This document shows positions 23,501-53,300 of a stretch of 64,000 nt of DNA, piece after piece. Where the stretch lies: contig NW_002060954.1 in the NCBI RefSeq assembly GCF_000150275.1, forward strand, positions 620,001-684,000, in the 5' to 3' direction. The position numbers and the translations under genes are program-made. Below the pieces are notes generated by a model that saw nothing but the letters and a program-made list of their open reading frames with translations, made no database searches and was not told where the DNA came from. The stretch comes from Trichoplax adhaerens. Lineage: Eukaryota; Animalia; Placozoa. Position 1 is the first letter of the stretch. Every line of letters begins with the position of its first letter.

Positions 23501-26500
23501 TTATTACGTATAATTAAAGCATCATATTACATTCGCCTATAAGTAGTATACCATTTGTTAGTATCGATATGTCTACTTGTAAAACTAAGGTCAATGTGCA
23601 AGACGAACCACTCATGGCACCTTAGAAGTGACGTTTAAATTATTAATAATCAATTATAACTATTGATTTACTTTGTTCTTTCTTTTCTTCGAATCAAAAT
23701 ATAACATTTTTTCTACTCAATTTTAATGATGATACTTATGAATAGAGTTCATAATTAATAGTTTTGTAATCCGATACCTGATAATAAAATAGTAAAGAAG
23801 CTTTAAAAAATCATTAAACTTATCCAATTAAAATGTTTGCCCTCAGAAGTTTTATTATTCAAAATATATACTGCTGGAGTATTTTAAGAATCATATCGCA
23901 ATTGAGAAATTATGAGGTTTTCGAATGACATTATCTTCAATTTTAAATTTTGTAGATTCTATAAATATAATTCGTATAAAGTTTAACCTTAGTATTACTG
24001 GAGGAAATTTTACAATACAATTTATAATGTGAATATGAAGGAAACGAAAATGTTCAATAGCAACAAGAAATAACAATAGTGAGAACAATCGCTAAAATAG
24101 TAATTTTCGCAATTGCAGGTATTACTTCTTTAAATTGCGATTCCAAAATCGATCTTTTGTTTTATTTTTTCTGATGTTGATAAATACGGATCATCTGAAG
24201 TATTATTTTGCTCTCTATGAATATAAACAGGCTGATTTCAAGATAAGACAGACCTTTCACCAGCTTTGTTACTTCGATGATAACCGGGATAACATGTTTT
24301 GAAGTTATTTCTGGAAATAAAATATCTACACAAATCCTTTCATTATACCTTTGCAACTTTTGTAGACAAAATATTGGTTACAAAGCATGGATAATTATCC
24401 AGATGTTTGAGATTTTGGTATAAAATAAACTTACAATTATACATCACGTGTACTTAAGCTTAAATAAATAGATTTAGATAAGGATGTATATAAAATGCCA
24501 TTATACAGGACCATATTATTAATTTATGTTGATTTAAAGTAGGATAAGTTAACTGCTTTACTTGGTATTATATTAGCTCTTACAAATATTGGTTCATCTT
24601 AAAAATAGAAATAAGTTAATTAAAACTGTATAGCCAAACAAAGAAAGTTAACTAATGAAAATAACATTATACGATGGTGAATCATTTGTTATCGATTCGC
24701 AAACTTGATAATAGTTTAAGTTTTAACTTATAAGATACATTACCTAATACCATAAATATAATCAAAATATTAATTATCTTTATTAGTTCACATACAATCT
24801 TTTGTTTTGTTCTGTGATATTGATTTGATTATTTATCGATCTTTTTCATCATTTATGCAAGCTCCACTGAAAGCTCCGCAACTTTAGAAAGAACTTGAGT
24901 TACAAAAATTCATAAATCAGACTATCGCTCTAAACAAAATTTTAGTAGCAGTGCTTTGACTAGAAGGCATGATAAATATAAGTCTGATCTATTAAATCAT
25001 TTATAGTATAATATTCTACTTTTCAACTCCATTGAGTAAACTAAGTAATACGAAAAGTGCAAATAATATTTCAAGAACTGCCAAGAATATGTCGTTAACA
25101 TGCAGGCCATTGTCATATTAAAATATAATTTTGTTACATTAAAATTTGTTTCTATTATTTTATCTGGAATAATGTATAATTTAGATATGAACCAAAATTA
25201 TGGCAGTACTTGTATTTGTGGTGAAGATATAATACATAAATTATTTTTAGTTCAATGTCAGTATTCGGAACAGCAGCAGTAGTAATTATAAAAGATGAAT
25301 TTACTTCATGTACTCTGGTTAGTATTGCTTGTTTACGGGTATTGCAGCAGTCACTTGGATATCATTTTACCCGTGTGTTGACTTGAGTAGTCATTTAAGG
25401 ATGTAAATCGTTTTTACAACTTTGCTAGTTAGAGTAAATTGGACATCCACTTTCATTTAAGTTTTAGATTGCACAGATAAGATAGAAAGTGAAATGAAAT
25501 ATTATTATGATATGAATACTAGACATTTAAAATAGAAATTAATGATCTTTTGAATATAGTATTGTATCATTCTTTATTGTCATAATATTAAAAATCCATC
25601 AATCTTGATATACAGAACCAATGTTATAACAGTTGTTTAGCTTTTGAAATAACCATGATTGACTATTGATGGATACTGCCTTTATCAATACAAATATTAT
25701 GTAACCAAGAGAAATGTATATGTTGATGATACATGTCAACGAAATTGGTTATTTTTCCTACTACTTCCACAATCTTTGAGTGTTCAATATAGTTATAATG
25801 TAACTAAACCAAAATAAGATGCGAAATTTTAGCAATAATACGAGTGATTTGCTACAGCAATCTCATGCTATATGATTTTATTTTTGATTTCATCTCTTAA
25901 TACTTAAAGCACATACTAATCCAATCCCGTCTCTACATCTGTAATAAAGTGTCTTCACAAAAATAAACAAGAACCACAATTTCTTTTAAATTTTACTTTA
26001 CTTCATTGCTTAGGTTCATTTAATTACTACCAAGAGCTATTTCTAGACTATATACAATCTTACAATCTCATATATAATTTGCCTATTTTTGCATAATCTA
26101 ACAACTTTAGTCTTAGATATATTTGGGGCTAGACTACATGTCTTCTCTATATCATAATTAAGATTTACTGCACCGTTCTTTCGCTAAATTAAGACTTTCG
26201 TTATTATTTCTATTCTATTGATTCTGCTTCAGATCACTTACTTCATAAATTTGCTCAATTACTGATACTTCGCTGTTTGATTCAAGCAATCAGCTTACTA
26301 ATTAAGAAAATTCAGTAATTTATCACTTCTGTTACGAATGCTTTGTAAGCCATAATGATAAGGACAAATGAGCTTGATAAACGCTATTTCACTGATTTCT
26401 AAAGCAGGTCTTAATTACGGTTCATATGTACAGAAATGAATTCGTAATCCATAACATCCCTTTTTGTCTCGAAGTTAAATGAATTCATAAAATAACAGAA

Positions 26501-29500: not shown

Positions 29501-32159
29501 TTACTTCATTAAATTAGTATTATAGTTATCAATCAGACTGAAAAACTTATAATTGCTAAAATTGCTATTTATACGGTAGAAGAAATCATGCTGTTTATGA
29601 CCTATGATTTATCCTTATATATCAGCAATAGTACATCACATAGGAGCAGACTATAAATGTTTTATTTGATACAATAACCTAGTGATTGTATGGTCTTGCA
29701 GTGTGTGAGAGTTTAATTTAATTTAAATATAAAAAACTCACCTTTAGTGCTTAAATCAAATCTATTCTTATATAGTTTTAATTTATATGGATCTTAATTT
29801 GCCTTAGTTACGTTATTATTGTATTTTTGTAGGCCTTCATAAGTATTACTGAACTTTGACTAGTTATAGCTAATTTTTTATTCTAGCCTTTTTACCTTAT
29901 AGATTTATTTTGTACAGTACGTTCTACGTTATAACTATTCGCCCTAGGGCTTCAACAATTCTTACACATTAGCAATACATTCACTCCGATTTCAACTATC
30001 TTCAATACAAGGATAATGTGACGATATTATTAATTAAATGACCATTTATTCTTTGACAATGCTAACTATTGTTTCAGTAATATTGATCGTCGTATCAAGT
30101 TTCAATATTTATACTATTCACTGCTTACAACCAGCACTCATGTTATACGGTATAAGTCACTTATGGTATCTTGTCCAGTCAGCGAACGTGCATTCGCACA
30201 TGTCTACTAAAATAAATCAACTTGGTGTGAACTTATATGGCAATAAACTTTGTTTTAAGGCAAAATTTTAAAATTTTAATGCCTCTGAATGTTATTGTAA
30301 TACAGCAAGAACAGTTGCAATTAAATAGGAGAATAAACCAAATCATAGGCTTTTCACCGTCAGATTTATGAATGATACCCGTACACTGTGATACTATATT
30401 ACATTACACTCAGGCTTTTCGATATTGAAATGTGTTAACGTACAGTATTCGCGTTTGTTATATTAAATCTTGCTACATGCATATGAGCCTAGTGTTGAAT
30501 GTTATTCTCTGACAAAAGTCATTAGATTGAGTTGGATATATGTCCTTACTCCATTAAATTTCCTATTGAAGCTATATAGTTCTAGGTAGTTGCAAGACGA
30601 ACCTAATTAATGTAATAAAGTGAAGTTTACAAGAAGCTGTAGTTTTTTTGTATTTTTGAGAAGACACTTTATCACAGAGGTAAAAGACGGTTATGGTAAA
30701 AAATATCGATCCCATTGGTTTATCTTACATTAAATTTAGATTCAATTCAATGCCATATGTAAGATCAAACTCCATTTCTAAGGATACAGTCAGTAATAAC
30801 TTATTTTAGAAGCTGATCAGAATTTTTGCTGACTATTTTATGCCATATTAAAGAAAAATTATCTTGCGATTCGCTAGTATGTTCTATGTAATCCCATGTA
30901 GTTTACCATTTTCGAGTTGCATACACTCCTCAACACATCTTGGAAATATATTCTGATGGAGTATAGTTCCACGTACTTGATTATAACGTATGATGTTCTT
31001 ATTTGTTGTAATTTTGTAATACAGACTTATACCATATATCTCGCACTTAATACAATCTGCATATGAGCATATTTCAATTGAGTATTGACATTTTATTAAT
31101 TATGGGTTGTCGTTTACTAATACAGGATCATTATTACGTTGCTAGGTACATAGCTTAATTACAGGACAGTTTATCCATTCAAATACACGCGAAGTAGTCA
31201 TTTAATTCTATTTACTATCTTTAGTATACCTTTGGGACGTTGAATAGGATTGCATGACTTTGAACAGTTATAAGTTATAAGCCAATAATTTCATTACAGT
31301 TTCAGAAATTAAATTAGATACAGGATATATTACGATAGCTACTATAATATACTTTTAAAATACTGACTAAGGAAATATCTCTGAAATGAAATATACATGT
31401 AGAAATACATGATATTCATAGGTAAAGTTATTTCATTGTAGGTATCATGATTATTTAGCAATAAGAATAATTTGCATGATCTAATATAGTGTTATCGATA
31501 TTACCGCCTAACTGCCTTCGATTTCTTACTCTTCCCAGTAGATTTGTAAGTAGTTATTAATAGATGTGATCTATCATAATTGTATAATTTTGATTGTGTG
31601 ACATTATCATAACCTGTCTTTGAGTAAGATAATTTAAAATTAGTCTCAGCATATTAGGCCGCATGAAACTAAACTTTTAGTTTGTTTTTTTGAATAATAT
31701 ATCATAACAATAGATGATCGAAATTCAACATGTACTTTAGTCTACCTATATTTTAGCCAAAATGTAAACATATTTCTATAAAATCTGGCGTTTTTAAAAT
31801 TTATTAACAGATAATTATTACTTTTCTGATAAGAATTTTTCGTTATGAAAATACCTTTCGCTTTTTTATTTATCGTAATAATTCTAGCTTGGTGATTCTT
31901 CTACGATTATTTGAGTTGATGAATTAGTTATATGAATGTTAGTGTTTTCTGGTAAAAGTTACCTTAAATATCCTATTGCTCTATGATTACATTTTATTAT
32001 AGCTAATCAAAGTATAATCTATACAATACTAAAAGATTAATGAGTTGCAATTAAGATAGTATTATAAATATAGATTGCTTTCAATTATATTTTAGTAGAA
32101 ATACAGAAAAATTGATTTCGTATTCATCATGACAGCCTTACCGTACCAAATACCGCTCC

Positions 32160-34893
32160 TTAGTTTTCTATATGGCATCAAATGAAATTAATTATTTTTT
32201 GCATATTGAAAATGAAAGCAGTAGTTGTTAAAAAATATACGTTTAATGGCACAATATGTCCTAAATATAGCAAAGATACTAGTATAGTAGCAATCTTACT
32301 ATGTATATTGCGCATATATGGGGCTTTCATCCATAATGGCACAAGCATAATCTCTTGTTGACTTGGTGTAGATGCTATTGCTGATTGAAATTAAACCAAT
32401 TTTAAAGCGACAGAGTTTTTAATCATTCTAATATTGAAGGCTTAATCGTTGCTACTGTAAATTATCGCTCTACCTCGTTAAAATTACTATAATTGATAGA
32501 TAACAATCGATTCTACAATAAATACTTTATAGCATTAATGGCAAGGCTAGCATAATAATTTTCTAATAATTTAATCATCCTATTTAGCCACTGGCAGCGT
32601 GTAAATTCTTAAATATAAAATCTAATGGTTTGAATAGTAATACGTAATCCTGATATAAGGATATAACATTTAGAATAGCACAGTATGCCGATACTATAGG
32701 ATTTTAATTAATAATCTAATTGTCATGGGAAAATTGGATAGTTTAGTCGTGTACTATATGTGAAACCAGTTTACGCATTATTTACGTAGTATAACAAACC
32801 TTCACGAGATAGAAGATTTTCGCGTGATTCACTATCATCTACTTGTATGTATATTAAAAAAATTAAAAAATGATTACTTTTATGTTATGACATTTTTTAA
32901 AATATCGAATACAACCGTATAACCTATTTTTTTTTATATTAAACTCAGATATACTGTAGCTTATAAAGCATCAGCACGATATCTTACTTAGATTGTATGC
33001 TAGTACATTTTACCTCTGAGAAATATTGGCAGGATTCGGTATTGATCATTATCTGTTATTGGTAATAGATGGTAAGTCATTAATGTTACCGTAGTGTAGT
33101 GATGAAAGTACTCTCATTGCTTACTTTTACGCATTGAATCTACACTTTGTATCTTTATTCTAGTAAATAGAATTAGCATTTCATCGATTTCATATGGATA
33201 CAGAAAGTTGAAACTTATTTTGGATTTACAAACAAGAACTGTCACATTTCTACAGGTAGCAATTACAATTTAGTAGCATCTATTTAATTCTATCGGACTT
33301 CAAATAACACGATAGGGATATAAATTTAAATATCCTTTTCTTTATTAATTTTACAGTAGCTATATTTCACTAGAATTAGAGCACTATTGATTTGTAATCT
33401 TAGAACCGTAATTATAAGCAGGCAATAGACAGCTACTTTATTGATTTTGTAATTACAATATCGTCGAAATCTATGAAAAATTACTTCATAGCAACTATGC
33501 ACTAACAAGGAAACGCTATTACTATCATAGGATGGAAATATAGTGCAAGTACTTCGATATCACAGAATATTACTGTAGTTCTACATTGGGTGTATAATAT
33601 GAACTTATATCTGATAAAATTAATCTGTTTGAAAAGTGACATGTAACATGTTATAGTAGATTATTAACGTTTTATGAATAAGAATAGCAATCACACTGAG
33701 AGTGGCTCGGTTTGTAAACAGAAAAATCTATACGAGCATATACAGTACATGCATAGTGTGATCTGTGTTTCGATATGTAGTGCGCAATAGATATCTAGTT
33801 TAGCTGGATGTGATAGGTAATTTATGACTTTTTATTGTAGTTCAAAACAGTTATCCAAAATAATAAGTTAGCACACTGATCATCTAGGATTGATCGGTAA
33901 TCTTTTTTAATTTAAATATTTTATTTGATAGGATAATAAAATTTATACGTTCATTATTTACCGGCTGCTCTGGCTTTTTCTCGACGAAAAAAGAATGGAA
34001 TCATTTGAGAGTTTTGTTGCTCATTTTGTTGCTCATTTTGTTGCTCATTTTGTTGCTCATTTTGTTCCTCATCTTGTTTCTTATTTTGTTTCTCATTTTG
34101 TTCCTCGTTTTCTAATATGAACAGATTCACAATAGTTATCATAGCTCAACTTAAGTGCTATAAAATTCTTGTAAATATAATAAGTTAAATAACATAGATT
34201 TCATTAAATTATACTATCACAGCAATATCGATCTAAAATGTGATTCTAAGTCTTCCTAAGTTAGTTATGATAGGATAGAATCGTATTGTACGGCATAAAA
34301 CAAATACAATACTGGTACAGTAATATTATATATAAAAATATAAGTTGAACACTGATATTTTGATAAACTATGCTTTATAATTGTACATAATCTGGTCTAA
34401 ATCATATCTTGATATTAATTTCAATGATCTATAGTATGAGTATGACCTCTTCTATCAGGGCTTATAGATAGATACTATATGATGTCTTGGTAGTAAATCT
34501 AAAGATCAAGCTGTCTTTTAATTGTTCTAGTAGAACTTGATTATGACGTAAATCAGTAAATTGAGCCTACATAATTATGTTGTACTAGACCTATAATTAA
34601 ACATGGAATCTCTATCTGATCGTAAATTTTTCACCAATATTGCAATATCACCACTACCGCACCTGTTAATAATACGGTATATATATATACAATGACTATT
34701 ACCACGTAAATATACTTAACAGAAGATTTTTGCTTCTCTATTTACAGTTAACTTCGCCGTTTACAATTTAAACTATTATAAATGATCGAAAAATTCGTAA
34801 TAAACATTACTACATCAACATACGAGTGACATATCGAGCTTTTATTTCAGTCACTGTCAGCAAAACTATCGCCAGAATGATAAGCTTGTTCAT
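32160..34893 (-). CDS. Putative neuropeptide precursor (signal peptide, NEQQ acidic spacer, IPFFF/LPIFL/VPLWM peptides), ~128 aa
   Basis: Exon 34893-34824 MNKLIILAIVLLTVTEIKA/RYVT (AAACCATG start context, donor GTATGT, phase 1). Then 34111-33962 (150 nt) ...NEQQNSQMIPFFFRREKARAA; 33052-33014 (39 nt) DNDQYRILPIFLR; 32838-32800 (39 nt) DDSESRENLLSRE; 32380-32300 (81 nt) AIASTPSQQEIMLVPLWMKAPYMRNIH; tentative end 32167-32160 (KN*). All internal exons are phase 1-1 with AG/GT boundaries. Confidence 0.68.
34012..34110 (-). repeat. 12-bp tandem repeat (TTTTGTTGCTCA)n, ~8 units, coding (NEQQ)n on the minus strand
   Basis: Directly visible. It lies inside the 150-nt exon of the putative prohormone. 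Confidence 0.9.
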
Positions 34894-37190
34894 GGTTTCG
34901 ATTGATCTGAGGACTATTGAGTAAAAAAAGTAAGCTATTAATACAATTAATGCGTTTGCTAAACCTCATAAATTTTAGATTTCAGATAGGAACGCTAGAC
35001 ATAATACTTCGTATAAATACTAATCAATAGTAATAAAAACGAGACGGATATATCGAGCGGTTATGGAAAAATTTAAAGTTTTTGAATTTAAACAACTTTA
35101 AATATGGTAGGATAACAAAATGATTATAACTTGAGAAGGTTAGAAATAGAAAGACAAAATATCCTAATGTCAATGATACGATAGCTACAGCCAGAAGACC
35201 TTAATTCAAGATTGCTTAACTATATTTATCAAGACGCTTTTCAGGTGCAGTTAACCTGTACCGGCCTTGCATGTTATAGGCACCATGGTAAATGAAATTT
35301 ATGCATGTATGTGAGGTTGATAGATCAAAAATCTTCAAAACTTTAGAAAAATAAGATTTATTGAACAAAACCTCCTTTACGAAGATACAACGTAATCGAT
35401 TAACTGAGGATCTCTAATGAGAAACAACTATCTTATACTGAACTACTCGCTTATATACTTTTTCCCGTTTACAGTCTTAGCACCTCACTTACTACACACT
35501 TCCTTATTAGCATCTCAAATACAGGATAGCTTACATCTTTCATGTGAAGCTCTAGTGTGAGCACTGTAGCGCTCTTCTTTAAAAGGATTACAGTTACTAA
35601 GCTAGCTATATCTAATACTTAAGCCTCTAACGAGAATATCTATCACATGTTGATCACAACACCTACGGTAGACATTACTAAATATATCATCAACTTAGAA
35701 TACAATATTACACTGTCTTACAATGTAGTTCAACTTCTACAGCATGATAATTTACTAATTTTTACGAGATATCAAATTTTAATACATTAGTAATGATACG
35801 CCGTTATTAAATATGATTAAAAAAATAAGGTCATCTTAATTTTTGGAAGCAGGAAGTTAAACTAATGATTACTATGTTTATGAGAGCAATCTATCCTGCA
35901 AATCATTCTAATATTGACAATTCCATAAAGAGTATATATTACCTAAGTTTAAAGCTATACTACAAGGGCGAAAACGGTTGTCTTATATATAAGCTGTATA
36001 CTACATATATATTAAAAGTTACCTAGTCGGACAAGAATCGGATTTTACAGTCGTTTATAAAAGTTTTATTGTTTCTATTACACTGATAATATATAATTGT
36101 AAAGATTGCAGATACTTTGTCCAATTGAATAGATCCATATAATATGGCTTATGATAGATTTAATGCTAATTTAGCAACTATAGTAACAGAATTAAAATGA
36201 TCTTAGAGGTAAATTAGCAAAAGAAAGCTTCACAGATTCAGTATATTTTATTCTAATGTTAGCAGGTACGAAGCACGATGACTTATTGTTGATACTTGTA
36301 ATGCTACTGACATTGATAAAGAATGATTCTCGTAACGTGACGATAAGAAATTAATAGATCGAAATAGATAATACTGGAGCGGTACAAATCTAGTAATAGC
36401 AATGCCAGGTCTAATCTTAATGTATCTAATGAATCCTTGGAAACATTCACAATACGAAATAAAAACTGCTCATTAAGAGTACTGGTAATAAACATAGCAT
36501 AAACTGATAGAAACATAATTATAGTTATTTCTAAAGATTACTTTTTATCATAGAGCAATCAATTTTGAAAAGTTAAAATCGAATTTTAGAATAATGCGCT
36601 AAACTTTGTAAATATGGTATTATACGAACTTTGTTTTGATATTTGATGCGAATAAACTCTAAATTAATTATACCATATTAGAAAAGTGAGAATTTAACGG
36701 ACCGTTTTAAATACATATTTTTACAATTTAATTTTACTTTCCTCACGTGAAAAAGATTTAAATATTTTAACGATAAAATAGAATTCGGGCTTCACACGAA
36801 TTTTTTTATGATATACTTACAGTTATCAACAAGATATAAGTTGGAGAATGGATATTGAATTTAAGGCCTGAATATTATCGCGCTGTATTTTTATATTCTT
36901 ATGGGATTACTAATTTGCATGTTACGTGAAAGACATCAAGTCAATAAATAAAATTTTAAATAATGTACGAGTCATATCTTAATGGTAAGCAAATACAATA
37001 TACTTAATTTAAATCGATACTTTGTTGCTAAGGTCACTTTTAGAGTTAACAAACTGCAGGTATAAATTCGACGCAATTTTGAAACCAACTCCAATATATA
37101 GAAGATTTTAAGAAGTGAATATAGTGGGAGGGTTTGTGCTATAAATCTCAATCTGTATCGAATCATGGCGATTAAGGAATCCACGTTTAC

Positions 37191-49100: not shown

Positions 49101-49435
49101 TACATTAATACGTTGTAAGATAAGAATGGCGCTGAATTAGTGTACAGATTTTTAGATGTTACTCACCGACTTTGGCTTTGAGACTTTCTACGACGTCTCG
49201 TTGCTCTGTTACCATAACAAGAAAGAACCAATAGAGAAGTTAATATTGTTGTTAAGTAATTTTATACTATTGTTGGTAGCTGACTATCGCAGTTACAGGT
49301 TATTCTTTGAACTCATAAAAAGTGCAGAAGGAAAATTGAAGCTACTTGTTCACTTTAATTACCTTCGATATGTCTGCAATCAACAAGGACACAGATCAAA
49401 GAGATAGCAATTAGAATGTTCAAGAATTTTGCCAT
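46185..49435 (-). CDS. PWN neuropeptide precursor (prohormone), ~250 aa, encoded by ~17 phase-1 micro-exons
   Basis: Signal exon 49435-49363 (MAKFLNILIAISLICVLVDC/RHIE). Then 49205-49167 EQRDVVESLKAKV; 49044-49009 GFLRDLSDNVAR; 48189-48145 and 47854-47810 AKKSFHFVENKKRLE; 48058-48014 and 47723-47679 ESTSPIDLPWNKRNQ; 47530-47492 and 47402-47364 GVLVDVPWNKRKQ; 47268-47230 GGLVDIPWNKREQ; 47134-47096 GALIDIPWNKREQ; 47001-46963 GALLDIPWNKRQQ; 46868-46830 GALLDIPWNKRRQ; 46727-46689 GVLVDVPWNKRQE; 46602-46555 AASLPLKFLLWNKRRQ; 46464-46399; 46324-46286 DSHPYIWNKKHDE; probable last exon 46189-46185 (V*). Every internal exon is AG/GT-bounded, a multiple of 3 and phase 1-1. EQGALLDIPWN matches the Trichoplax PWN peptide as recalled. 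Extra exons between 48190 and 49008 and the 3' end are uncertain. Confidence 0.88.
46270..48235. repeat. ~133-bp tandem array (exon+intron units of the PWN gene) including a near-identical 335-bp two-exon duplication
   Basis: The TAACGGACC anchor recurs at 46681, 46822, 46955, 47088, 47222, 47356, 47484, 47802 and 48137, with variants near 46279, 46547, 47670 and 48005. The block starting ~47566 is repeated at ~47901. Confidence 0.95.
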
Positions 49436-50388: not shown

Positions 50389-53300
50389 TTAAGGTCGTCA
50401 CAACAGCTATATCAGCTATGCATCATATACGTTAGGTATACTTACATAAGATATAGAGTAAAATCAATTCAACACGTATGTATGGTCTGTTTTGTTTGCA
50501 ATGATCGTGTTACAGTTCGTAATATAAATTTTGAGTTAAATTAAATACTGTTCTATACTGCAGTAAAATTAAGTTAATTATTACTGAATTAACCTTAAAT
50601 ATGCGATTTGATCATATTGATACGTCGCATCGATACTTAAGAACTATATTGATTTCTGGCTTTTGGAAGTTCATAGTGTTTTCTTAAATAGATATATGCA
50701 ATCATCGTATGCGTATTTCAAATTAATTGTAGTTACCGTGTGTTCTTGTGAAGAAATTCTCGTTACGTATTAAACTTCCTACAGATTCTATTCCGAAGCC
50801 TAGCAAGTATGATGCACTTGACCTTTATCCTTCAATACTCTGTACTTAATTATATCTCTAGTACTTTCCTAACTATCTGCTAATAAAAAGCATTCAATGG
50901 CTCAATAGGACTAATGAACCTTCATTTTATTGTATGACAATTAAATCCTTGTACATAGTGTATTTTTTAAATATTTCAATAGTAAAGTAGCATTTTAAGG
51001 AAAAGATAAAACAATTAAGCTATAATTTTTAGCCAAGCTAAAGTCGAATGTTTCATTGTTTCGTTTCTTAGAACTATCTAAGAACATTTCATACTACTTC
51101 GCTGATGTCACTAGTTATGAAAGCACTATCATGATTATAGCGTTGTTGTTAGCATCTGTTAGCCTATCGTTTGCCGAAGTTATGCAGTTCTGTAAGATTT
51201 AAGAATAGCAGTTTAAAGATTATTTTTTAAGGTGCAAGTACCCTAACAAGATGTTGAAATGAATCAAACTTATGGATACTTCGCTACACAAAATGCTTCG
51301 TTTCTTATTGCATGCTATTCTCTTCCATACTATAGGTATACGAGTGCATGACTGCAAGTACCGTAATTGCGTCTTTACCAACGTTATTTTAAAAATTGTA
51401 ACCAACTGATTAAATTCATATGTACTGATTCATGAAATAATTATAATATATCGCTATCGAATTAGGCACAAGAATCAAATAAAATTTTAAATATACACGT
51501 TATGATTTGACTCATAAATAATTGCATGTAGCAGTCAATTTGTTAGGATCTGTCAAAAAAATGACACATATTGAAATATTTGCTTCAATTCGCTTTCAGG
51601 ATGAAAGGATTCACACTTGCATCAAGCTAAATCATTATATACGAATGATTAAAAATATCTATCGGGCTTTTATTTAATCAAAACCATTCTAGCAACCATT
51701 TAACATAGTTAAATAATAAATTAATTTCTTAAGCAGCTATCGATTGTACTTTATAGTTGAAGCTTAACGACTAGATATTTTATTTCATTTATGATCAAAA
51801 TGAGATGATCGAAATAGAAAATATTGATGTGATGATAAGAAATAGAAAAGAAAGATAGTGCGCGTAGTACGGGTTTATTTCGGTGTTAAAAAACATGATT
51901 TAAGAGAAAGGCTTAATAAATAGAATTCTTACTTACAGTGATGTGATTTTCTATTAAAATTATTCCAGATGTGATAGTGGGAAAGTCGAGTCCAGAATTG
52001 AATAAACTTGCTGGAGAATCTACTTATATAGATAAATAAGATTAAGTTAATTAACATATTATGAAACCATAATGTCAACGCGTCATTAATCGGCCAACTG
52101 AATAGATACTGATGTTGCTTATGCTTGATAATCAGATCTTTTAATGAGACCTTATGGTAAAATATTAATTGGATCTGAAAGGTAATGATGACAGACAGTT
52201 TTTATTTCCGTTTCATTGATATCTATTGAGACAATAACTGCTTGGACTACATCTACATTGGTAATCAATTGAATTCAATGCTTTAGTCAATTAGTTTTAC
52301 TAATTATATTTTTCTTTACTATTTTTATATTTGAGTGACGTTCAAAATTTGAGAAAGAATAGTCTGAGTTACCTATATTTTTGGTTCTGTGGCAATAAAC
52401 GATCAAGACGAAATATCAATAAGTTATAATAATCATAAAGAATAGAAAAGGCTTCTAAATAATTGTTGGTATTGATAACAAGGATGTTCTTTGCTATCAT
52501 AATGATGAACAAGGTCATATTTAAGTGCCGTTAATGCTATTATTGCTAATTTTAACCACCTCACTATCGTTATAGGATCAAAGATTAGAATGAATATGAG
52601 TAGAAAACTATTAATAATACGAATAAACGACATCAAAGTGCAATTGATGAATAGCTAGAAATTAATATCAATATTGAACCTGTTTTGATCATCTCAACAT
52701 CCTGTTTTCCGCTCTCAACTATCACCATTCACAACTTATAACTATTATGATAAAATATTTACTTGTAGAATTGTAAACTTGGCTTACAGTTTTTCCTACA
52801 CAATTTCATTTTAATGCAGTTACCGTACCGTGTATTTAATTGCCTTCAGATCTTGTATCCTTTTTATTATTTGATTGTTTATATGTTTATTTTGACAGTG
52901 CAGCCAGATATAGCCTATGAAAAACGATGTTCAATCTTATTATCTTACAAAATTGTAAAAGCTATCCACCAAATTAATCATTAATATCAACTATACCCGT
53001 TCTTTCTGGGAAAGATTATTCATTGCTATGTAAAAAGTGAAATTAAAAGATGACTTGAATGATTCATACTAAAATTATAATTAATATTTAAACTTAATGA
53101 ATAATCTGATGTGCAAAAGAACGTAAATTAAGTTTCTCTATTCATTCCTTTATCATTTTTGCCTTATCAATCGATTATAATTAATGGGTTCCTTATATAA
53201 GGGATATGCCCTAATTTCAGCAGCATATGAAAGCAGCTGTATTTTTTATAATTTCTTAACATATAATTAACATAGTGTTCCGTAATCTCATTGACTTGAT

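Follow-up and report, generated by a model that had tools for sequence, protein, structure and literature searches.

Placozoans have no neurons, and their behaviour is coordinated by secreted peptides, each addition to which is directly testable for a behavioural effect. In cnidarian precursors of peptides that begin with pyroglutamate (pGlu, or pQ where it derives from Gln), trimming of the N-terminus down to Gln takes place in the absence of a basic site. The PWN precursor of Trichoplax sp. H2 (TrH2_TrispH2_000337, orthogroup OG_1925) shows a fold change of 1318 in the cell type peptidergic_delta (Najle et al. 2023, PMC10580291; what is said here and below of this article and its Table S5 applies to the portion of them that was available). 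PWN-positive cells are located at the margin of the animal (PMC13128682), and the PWN peptide makes animals crinkle. Here we describe a gene on the minus strand of a 64,000-nucleotide stretch of Trichoplax adhaerens contig NW_002060954.1 (positions 620,001 to 684,000; hereafter the window, whose numbering is used throughout), which lies between the PWN precursor gene and a peptide gene of orthogroup OG_1926. We regard it as very probably the T. adhaerens counterpart of TrH2_TrispH2_000336 (OG_3968), a propeptide gene without a name, with eight exons, of which six are coding, for a 128-amino-acid (aa) pre-propeptide, which would be made in PWN-type ('delta') peptidergic cells and processed into the products proposed below. 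That the gene yields small peptides in peptidergic cells is already on record; its catalogue entry is unnamed and has an incomplete model. What is new here is a corrected gene model, to which the signal exon and both exons of the untranslated regions (UTRs) have been added, and three more predicted peptides, all hydrophobic, from a gene co-expressed with PWN; the signal peptide and these three peptides are the parts of the gene without a prior record. The gain is incremental, as the gene is already catalogued and its kind is well known, while the predicted peptides are short enough to be synthesized and tested.

A first-pass annotation of the window, made from the sequence, had proposed a signal exon followed by four symmetric phase-1 exons. 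This architecture is borne out by the exon translations, by the GT..AG intron ends, and by contigs of four public RNA runs from four different studies, which were placed on positions 32000-35100 of the window. To that model we add a 5' exon ending at 36821, the start of exon 1 at 34913, and a 3'UTR intron at 32141-31901 (241 nt, beginning 18 nt past the stop codon). The features of the gene are as follows.

36888..36895, minus strand: TATAAAAA box, an inferred promoter element read off the genome sequence, ~38 nt upstream of the 5'-most base seen in RNA
36821..36857, minus strand: non-coding 5' exon of at least 37 nt, with no ATG and a GTAAGT donor after 36821 (loose ends of contigs, runs X18 and X15)
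34824..34913, minus strand: exon 1, with 20 nt of 5'UTR, the ATG at 34893-34891, and 23 codons plus 1 base; predicted signal peptide MNKLIILAIVLLTVTEIKA, then RYVT (translation, and an X18 contig covering 34829-34913)
33962..34111, minus strand: exon 2, 150 nt, phase 1-1, encoding Q, eight NE[EKQ]Q-like units and NS-QMIPFFF-RR-EKARAA (translation; joint 33962/33052 in 4 runs)
34012..34111, minus strand: 12-nt tandem repeat, 8.3 copies with 90% matches, encoding the NEQQ-like units (repeat search; RNA contigs break there)
34083..34111, minus strand: pQNEEQNEKQN, its Gln encoded by a codon split between 34824 and 34111-34110, with nine further codons and then KK (translation; published mass-spectrometry peptide re-read)
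33987..34007, minus strand: predicted peptide QMIPFFF, with NS before and RR after (translation and motif scan)
33014..33052, minus strand: exon 3, 39 nt, phase 1-1, encoding D-ND-QYRILPIFL-R, with the predicted peptide at 33044-33018 (both flanking joints in 4 runs)
32800..32838, minus strand: exon 4, 39 nt, phase 1-1, encoding the acidic spacer DDSESRENLLSRE (both flanking joints in 4 runs)
32300..32380, minus strand: exon 5, 81 nt, phase 1-1, encoding A-IASTPSQQEIMLVPLWM-K-APYMRNIH, with the third peptide of the first-pass annotation at 32360-32328 (joints in 4 runs)
32142..32167, minus strand: exon 6, 26 nt, completing K, then N and the TAA stop at 32162-32160, and 18 nt of 3'UTR, after which comes a GT donor (joint 32300/32167 in 4 runs)
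31289..31900, minus strand: 3'UTR exon, its start at 31900 shown and its end inferred from the 612 letters of an X12 contig beyond exon 6

The four joints 33962/33052, 33014/32838, 32800/32380 and 32300/32167 are each present in all four RNA runs, the first three having been predicted in the first-pass annotation, and no exon-skipping joint was reported among the contigs of these runs. The word depth of the spliced contigs reaches 823 in run X12 and 455 in run X14, against 3-10 for pieces of intron. The outer exons were placed by the loose ends of contigs: that of an X18 contig at 34913 matches 36821-36840 exactly, one in X15 matches 36828-36857, and the loose end at 32142 in three runs matches 31871-31900, which gives the 3'UTR splice; the X12 contig continues for 612 further letters beyond exon 6. 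One might suspect chance open frames or a mis-spliced model in place of a coding gene, given an AT-rich genome, tiny exons and blank protein databases, but this explanation is refuted, to the point that we give it next to no weight, by the presence of every junction in RNA contigs and by published mass-spectrometry (MS) peptides that map to exons 2, 4/5 and 5. The window thus holds a genuine Trichoplax gene, spliced and strongly expressed, whose product is a small secreted precursor of peptides.

Several peculiarities of the transcripts were noted along the way. Run X18 holds two versions of the exon 1 end (34824-34828) at similar depth, CACTC (Thr23) and TATTC (Ile23), with a three-letter difference between the contigs, which might stem from two alleles or from two strains present in the sample. 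In X14 and X18 there is a G>C change at 34055, which turns Gln to Glu within the repeat. In X15 (record 13), an 894-nt contig fuses plus-strand 32000-32113 to sense letters of the 5' exon from 36857 in an inversion-like manner; an inversion was ruled out as the cause, since the 32142-to-31900 splice is retained in runs of that organism, and the contig probably arose as a chimera, in the cDNA or in the assembly, marking the 5' end of the mRNA. Upstream of the gene, an octamer ATGCAAAT (candidate POU-type site) lies at 36912-36919 on the minus strand, and a CACGTAAC element lies directly upstream of the putative TATA box.

The coding sequence comprises 387 nt, or 128 codons plus the stop; both this and the length of the precursor come from the arithmetic of the exon coordinates. 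Since the 5' exon is non-coding and without ATG, the ATG at 34893 is the first of the mRNA. Exons 1 to 5 translate as MNKLIILAIVLLTVTEIKARYVT, NEEQ...NSQMIPFFFRREKARAA, NDQYRILPIFLR, DSESRENLLSRE and IASTPSQQEIMLVPLWMKAPYMRNIH, respectively, and the codons split across the introns encode Q, D, D, A and K. All the introns have GT..AG ends in the genome sequence (CT..AC on the plus strand), a GTATG donor following the MNKLIILAIVLLTVTEIKARYVT exon after 34824, and exons 2-5, that is, all the internal coding exons, are symmetric with phase 1-1. The signal exon consists of MNK, an 11-residue hydrophobic core and TEIKA; over its most hydrophobic 12 residues the Kyte-Doolittle average is 3.12, and it ranks in the top three of the phase-1 signal-like exons on its strand. 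In the 128-aa precursor, the candidate peptides are followed by KK, RR, R and K. The claim of the first-pass annotation that this is a secreted peptide precursor of a placozoan is upheld by the signal exon, by the basic cleavage sites, and by the H2 counterpart in peptidergic (PWN-type) cells.

In Table S5 of Najle et al. 2023 (PMC10580291), this counterpart, TrH2_TrispH2_000336, is listed without a name in OG_3968 and placed in the class 'nosignature_nSP_nTM' (no signal peptide). Its maximum fold change of 78.4 is in peptidergic_delta, the PWN cell type (PMC10580291). Three MS peptides are assigned to it: ENEEQNEKQN, with a dehydrated N-terminus, 4 peptide-spectrum matches (PSM), an abundance percentile of 0.96 and the context [L].x.[K]; EAIASTPSQQE, with 2 PSM; and LVPLWMKAPYM, with 1 PSM, low abundance and the context [M].x.[R] (PMC10580291). 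By these published MS data, which are deposited in PRIDE as PXD042821, processed pieces of the precursor, namely the acidic N-terminal peptide and two fragments, occur in animals.

The corrected model changes the reading of the first of these peptides. Upstream of exon 2, the frame is open back to an intronic ATG, which gives MITIVNLFILE before NEEQ; the 'L' before ENEEQNEKQN in the H2 model is therefore the end of intron 1 read as coding, and this read-through accounts for the label 'no signal peptide'. At the RNA-supported junction of exons 1 and 2 the residue is Gln (C|AA), and the dehydrated Glu and the pyroGlu-from-Gln forms of the peptide have an identical mass (1242.5113). Because of these two facts, the peptide, which bears the number H2NP027 in the published catalogue, is best read as a putative pyroGlu-NEEQNEKQN that would start at the split Gln codon of exons 1 and 2 and be cut before KK. 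The second peptide, EAIASTPSQQE, runs from the final codon of exon 4 through the split Ala into the beginning of exon 5, and thus supports the exon 4/5 junction at the protein level; as it starts right after an Arg, it also indicates monobasic cleavage. LVPLWMKAPYM lies wholly within exon 5.

We propose that the signal peptidase would cut after Ala19, and that a prohormone convertase would cut the pro-region after KK, RR, R and perhaps K. A carboxypeptidase would then trim the C-terminal basic residues, and the N-termini would be trimmed back to Gln, which would cyclise to pyroGlu. None of the basic sites has a Gly before it, so amidation is not expected and the peptides would keep free C-termini, like PWN, MFPF and WPPF. 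The products would be pQNEEQNEKQN, which has been observed provided that the Gln-derived reading of the MS peptide holds, and three short, hydrophobic, Pro-containing peptides, namely pQMIPFFF, pQYRILPIFL and either IMLVPLWM or pQQEIMLVPLWM. The calculated [M+H]+ values of the latter are 912.432 for pQMIPFFF, 1145.672 for pQYRILPIFL, 1002.552 for IMLVPLWM and 1370.685 for pQQEIMLVPLWM. All these products would be co-released with the PWN peptides and act on neighbouring cells.

The predicted hydrophobic peptides are of the placozoan type, in which a pGlu start goes with a Pro ahead of hydrophobic residues close to the end and a free C-terminus. They share a grammar of a pGlu start, a hydrophobic residue, Pro, an aromatic residue and a basic residue, which by analogy is validated in the neighbouring OG_1926 gene (see below). 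The pattern P-[FWILMV]-[FW]-[FWILMVN]-[KR] has six matches in the six-frame translation of the window, half of them in this gene; its rough Poisson expectation in 128 aa is 0.003, for a motif that was defined post hoc. As to other places in the window, a candidate exon with 'DEPIFVR' at 24578-24592 was set aside on its translated context alone, a stop lying two codons upstream.

We put forward tentatively, as a possibility that falls somewhat short of an even chance, that pQMIPFFF, pQYRILPIFL and the ...IMLVPLWM peptide are secreted signalling peptides, a new hydrophobic Pro-containing set that the marginal 'delta' cells release along with PWN, and that the gene is a fast-evolving or Trichoplax-born member of a cluster of three co-oriented genes. 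If true, this would make it a tractable case of new neuropeptide genes arising from arrays of micro-exons. A number of observations weigh against this proposal or against the gene model behind it. The three motifs named in the first-pass annotation (QMIPFFF, QYRILPIFL and QQEIMLVPLWM) are indeed encoded in three exons, but as peptides they are absent among those listed in Table S5 (PMC10580291); being hydrophobic, they may have been lost in extraction. The third of them, pQQEIMLVPLWM cut at K, is in conflict with the MS data at both ends: EAIASTPSQQE is cut after Glu, just before IMLVPLWM and not before Gln-Gln, so that the third product would start at IMLVPLWM, and LVPLWMKAPYM runs through the Lys uncut. 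The expression and MS data come from Trichoplax sp. H2, while the sequenced strain differs. In Table S5 the species of OG_3968 are 'Tadh,TrH2' only (PMC10580291), and there is no orthologue outside Trichoplax on record. The receptor evidence for peptides of the precursor consists of the in-silico docking of ENEEQNEKQN only (PMC10580291). Finally, the remaining junction of the first-pass annotation, 34824/34111, which joins the signal exon to exon 2, was found in run X18 only, in two contigs, and outside X18 the first 45 nt of exon 2 are uncovered as well; the gap in the other runs is uninformative, because the NEQQ repeat breaks assemblies and some of the libraries are suspected to be 3'-biased.

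Much of the same evidence bears on the alternative that the acidic N-terminal peptide (pQNEEQNEKQN, perhaps together with peptides of the NEQQ repeat) is alone functional, the hydrophobic stretches being spacer or sorting sequence. ENEEQNEKQN is the sole abundant MS product (96th percentile, 4 PSM), it was picked by Najle et al. for receptor docking as one of 60 peptides (PMC10580291), and the exon 5 fragments disregard the predicted boundaries. Yet in the two receptor blocks seen it ranked near the bottom in docking score (PMC10580291), and precursors of this kind normally carry acidic repeats as spacers. In addition, each of three exons places a hydrophobic segment precisely between an N-terminal Gln and basic residues, and the same grammar gives verified peptides in neighbouring genes; we therefore judge this alternative unlikely, if a serious competitor. 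A different function is suggested by the layout of arminin-like genes of Trichoplax (PMC11452194), in which a signal peptide is followed by an acidic N-terminal half and a basic and hydrophobic C-terminal half, and which the present precursor resembles; it would then be a defensive or antimicrobial secreted peptide and not a signal. However, the arminin-like genes are expressed in epithelial cells, encode 150-250 aa and have a Gly at the end, while this gene is enriched in peptidergic delta cells, and its C-terminal half would be cut to 7-11 residues, too short for membrane-active helices, which makes a defensive role very improbable.

The first-pass annotation had also suggested an unrecognised peptide family. 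None of the eleven classical Trichoplax peptides tested in Varoqueaux et al. 2018 (10.1101/360925) matches the precursor, and to that extent the suggestion stands; on the other hand, the gene is catalogued in Table S5 with its three MS peptides (PMC10580291). A full-text search found the strings QMIPFFF, QYRILPIFL and QQEIMLVPLWM printed in no paper text, supplements being outside its reach. The precursor matched no Pfam family. In the protein-level searches, exons or exon-centred open frames were taken singly and not joined: the 62-aa frame around exon 2 returned nothing at E <= 0.001 among 1.84 billion representatives, and no candidate homologous protein came back for the 70-aa frame around exon 5; the weight of both blanks is limited by the shortness of the exons and by the low-complexity repeat. 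Within the genome (105,631,681 bases, 1414 contigs), neither exon 2 nor exon 5 has a match other than itself, so the gene is single copy.

The locus belongs to a series of three co-oriented minus-strand peptide genes spaced ~10 kb apart, the OG_1926 gene, this gene and the PWN gene, and the DNA between them shows no obvious feature. Their H2 counterparts are numbered consecutively, 000335, 000336 and 000337, and the region that holds them (~20000-60000) has a GC content of 27-29%, compared with 31-36% at the ends of the window. The flanking features are as follows.

~49435-46185, minus strand: PWN precursor gene (TrH2_TrispH2_000337, OG_1925), ATG at 49435, upstream of this gene
21630 to 20152-20150, minus strand: OG_1926 gene (TrH2_TrispH2_000335), from the ATG to the stop; five coding exons, signal exon MAKITILLVLFVFFLTLIDAHQSD, ending ...DDNQL|S|VSKMPF-KR-YS*
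51131-51191, plus strand: signal-like exon MIIALLLASVSLSFAEVMQF, ending in phase 1 before a GTAAGA donor; a possible following exon near 51336 would add a Cys-containing tail

In Hoilungia, PWN is g06965 and OG_1926 is g06967, so that one gene, g06966, lies between them (PMC10580291). The position between two peptide genes is thus apparently mirrored there, and g06966 is a candidate positional orthologue of this gene. In all three window genes, the signal exon ends in phase 1 and every intron read is of phase 1; common descent of the three is a hypothesis drawn from this architecture and from their position. A search of this locus against the neighbouring PWN and OG_1926 loci with blastn gave noise only, the alignment of the signal exons among the neighbouring genes was uninformative, and exon-by-exon local alignment against shuffles gave a best p of 0.016 among 36 comparisons, nothing beyond the multiple-testing level. 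In any case, the locus is a concrete place to study the origin and turnover of peptide genes.

Compared one by one, the PWN precursor gene shares with this gene the strand, the peptidergic delta cell type and a phase-1 signal exon (73 nt of coding sequence in PWN and 70 nt here). Phase-1 micro-exons occur in both, 39 nt long in many PWN exons and in exons 3 and 4 here, which is an architectural likeness only. The PWN peptides start with Gln, carry hydrophobic-Pro-Trp near the end and have a free C-terminus followed by K/R, and VPLWM-K of this gene resembles V/IPWN-KR of PWN. The PWN peptides, however, straddle exon junctions, whereas those of this gene each lie within one exon; there is no detectable similarity between the two genes in DNA or in exon-level protein, and their published orthogroups differ (OG_3968 and OG_1925). 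Repeated [IV]PWN-K-R peptides do not occur in this gene, the only IPWN matches of the window being in the PWN gene at 46.8-47.3 kb.

The OG_1926 precursor gene likewise lies on the same strand, with a phase-1 signal exon and all introns of phase 1. For this precursor, MS identified pQLSVSKMPF (H2NP026), flanked by [N] and [K], and pQLKVHNLPF comes from the Hoilungia orthologue (PMC10580291); in the window gene, pQLSVSKMPF straddles the last exon junction. The verified peptide follows the same grammar, with [N/S/D], pQ..., hydrophobic-Pro-Phe and K/R. It differs from the present case in having one C-terminal copy of the peptide, in its eta cell type, and in its conservation in Hoilungia, in contrast to the Trichoplax-only OG_3968, and no significant exon-level similarity to this gene was found. 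Two small likenesses are hints only: exon 2 here ends in 'KARAA|D' as compared with 'KAKV|G', and 'IAS' opens both exon 5 of this gene and exon 4 of the OG_1926 gene.

Farther afield, acidic spacers and C-terminal basic cleavage are shared with the precursors of the non-amidated Trichoplax peptides MFPF, WPPF, LF and LFNE and with the cnidarian pGlu precursors, whose peptide sequences differ from those of this gene. TaELP (QDYPFFGN) has Q-x-x-P-F-F in common with QMIPFFF, the only one of the three peptides that resembles it. The TaELP locus (L003, 1423-1614; G000:C1388, ~640.8-640.9 kb, on another contig) encodes three ...DYPFFG[NS]-KKR/RKR units of 11 residues in one exon, as published. TaELP as a relative was ruled out by this layout, which consists of single-exon tandem repeats with Gly-Asn/Ser, as against one Q-x-x-P-F-F unit followed by F-RR here. 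On the plus strand, the signal-like exon at 51131-51191 may, judging from its translation, belong to a further small secreted product.

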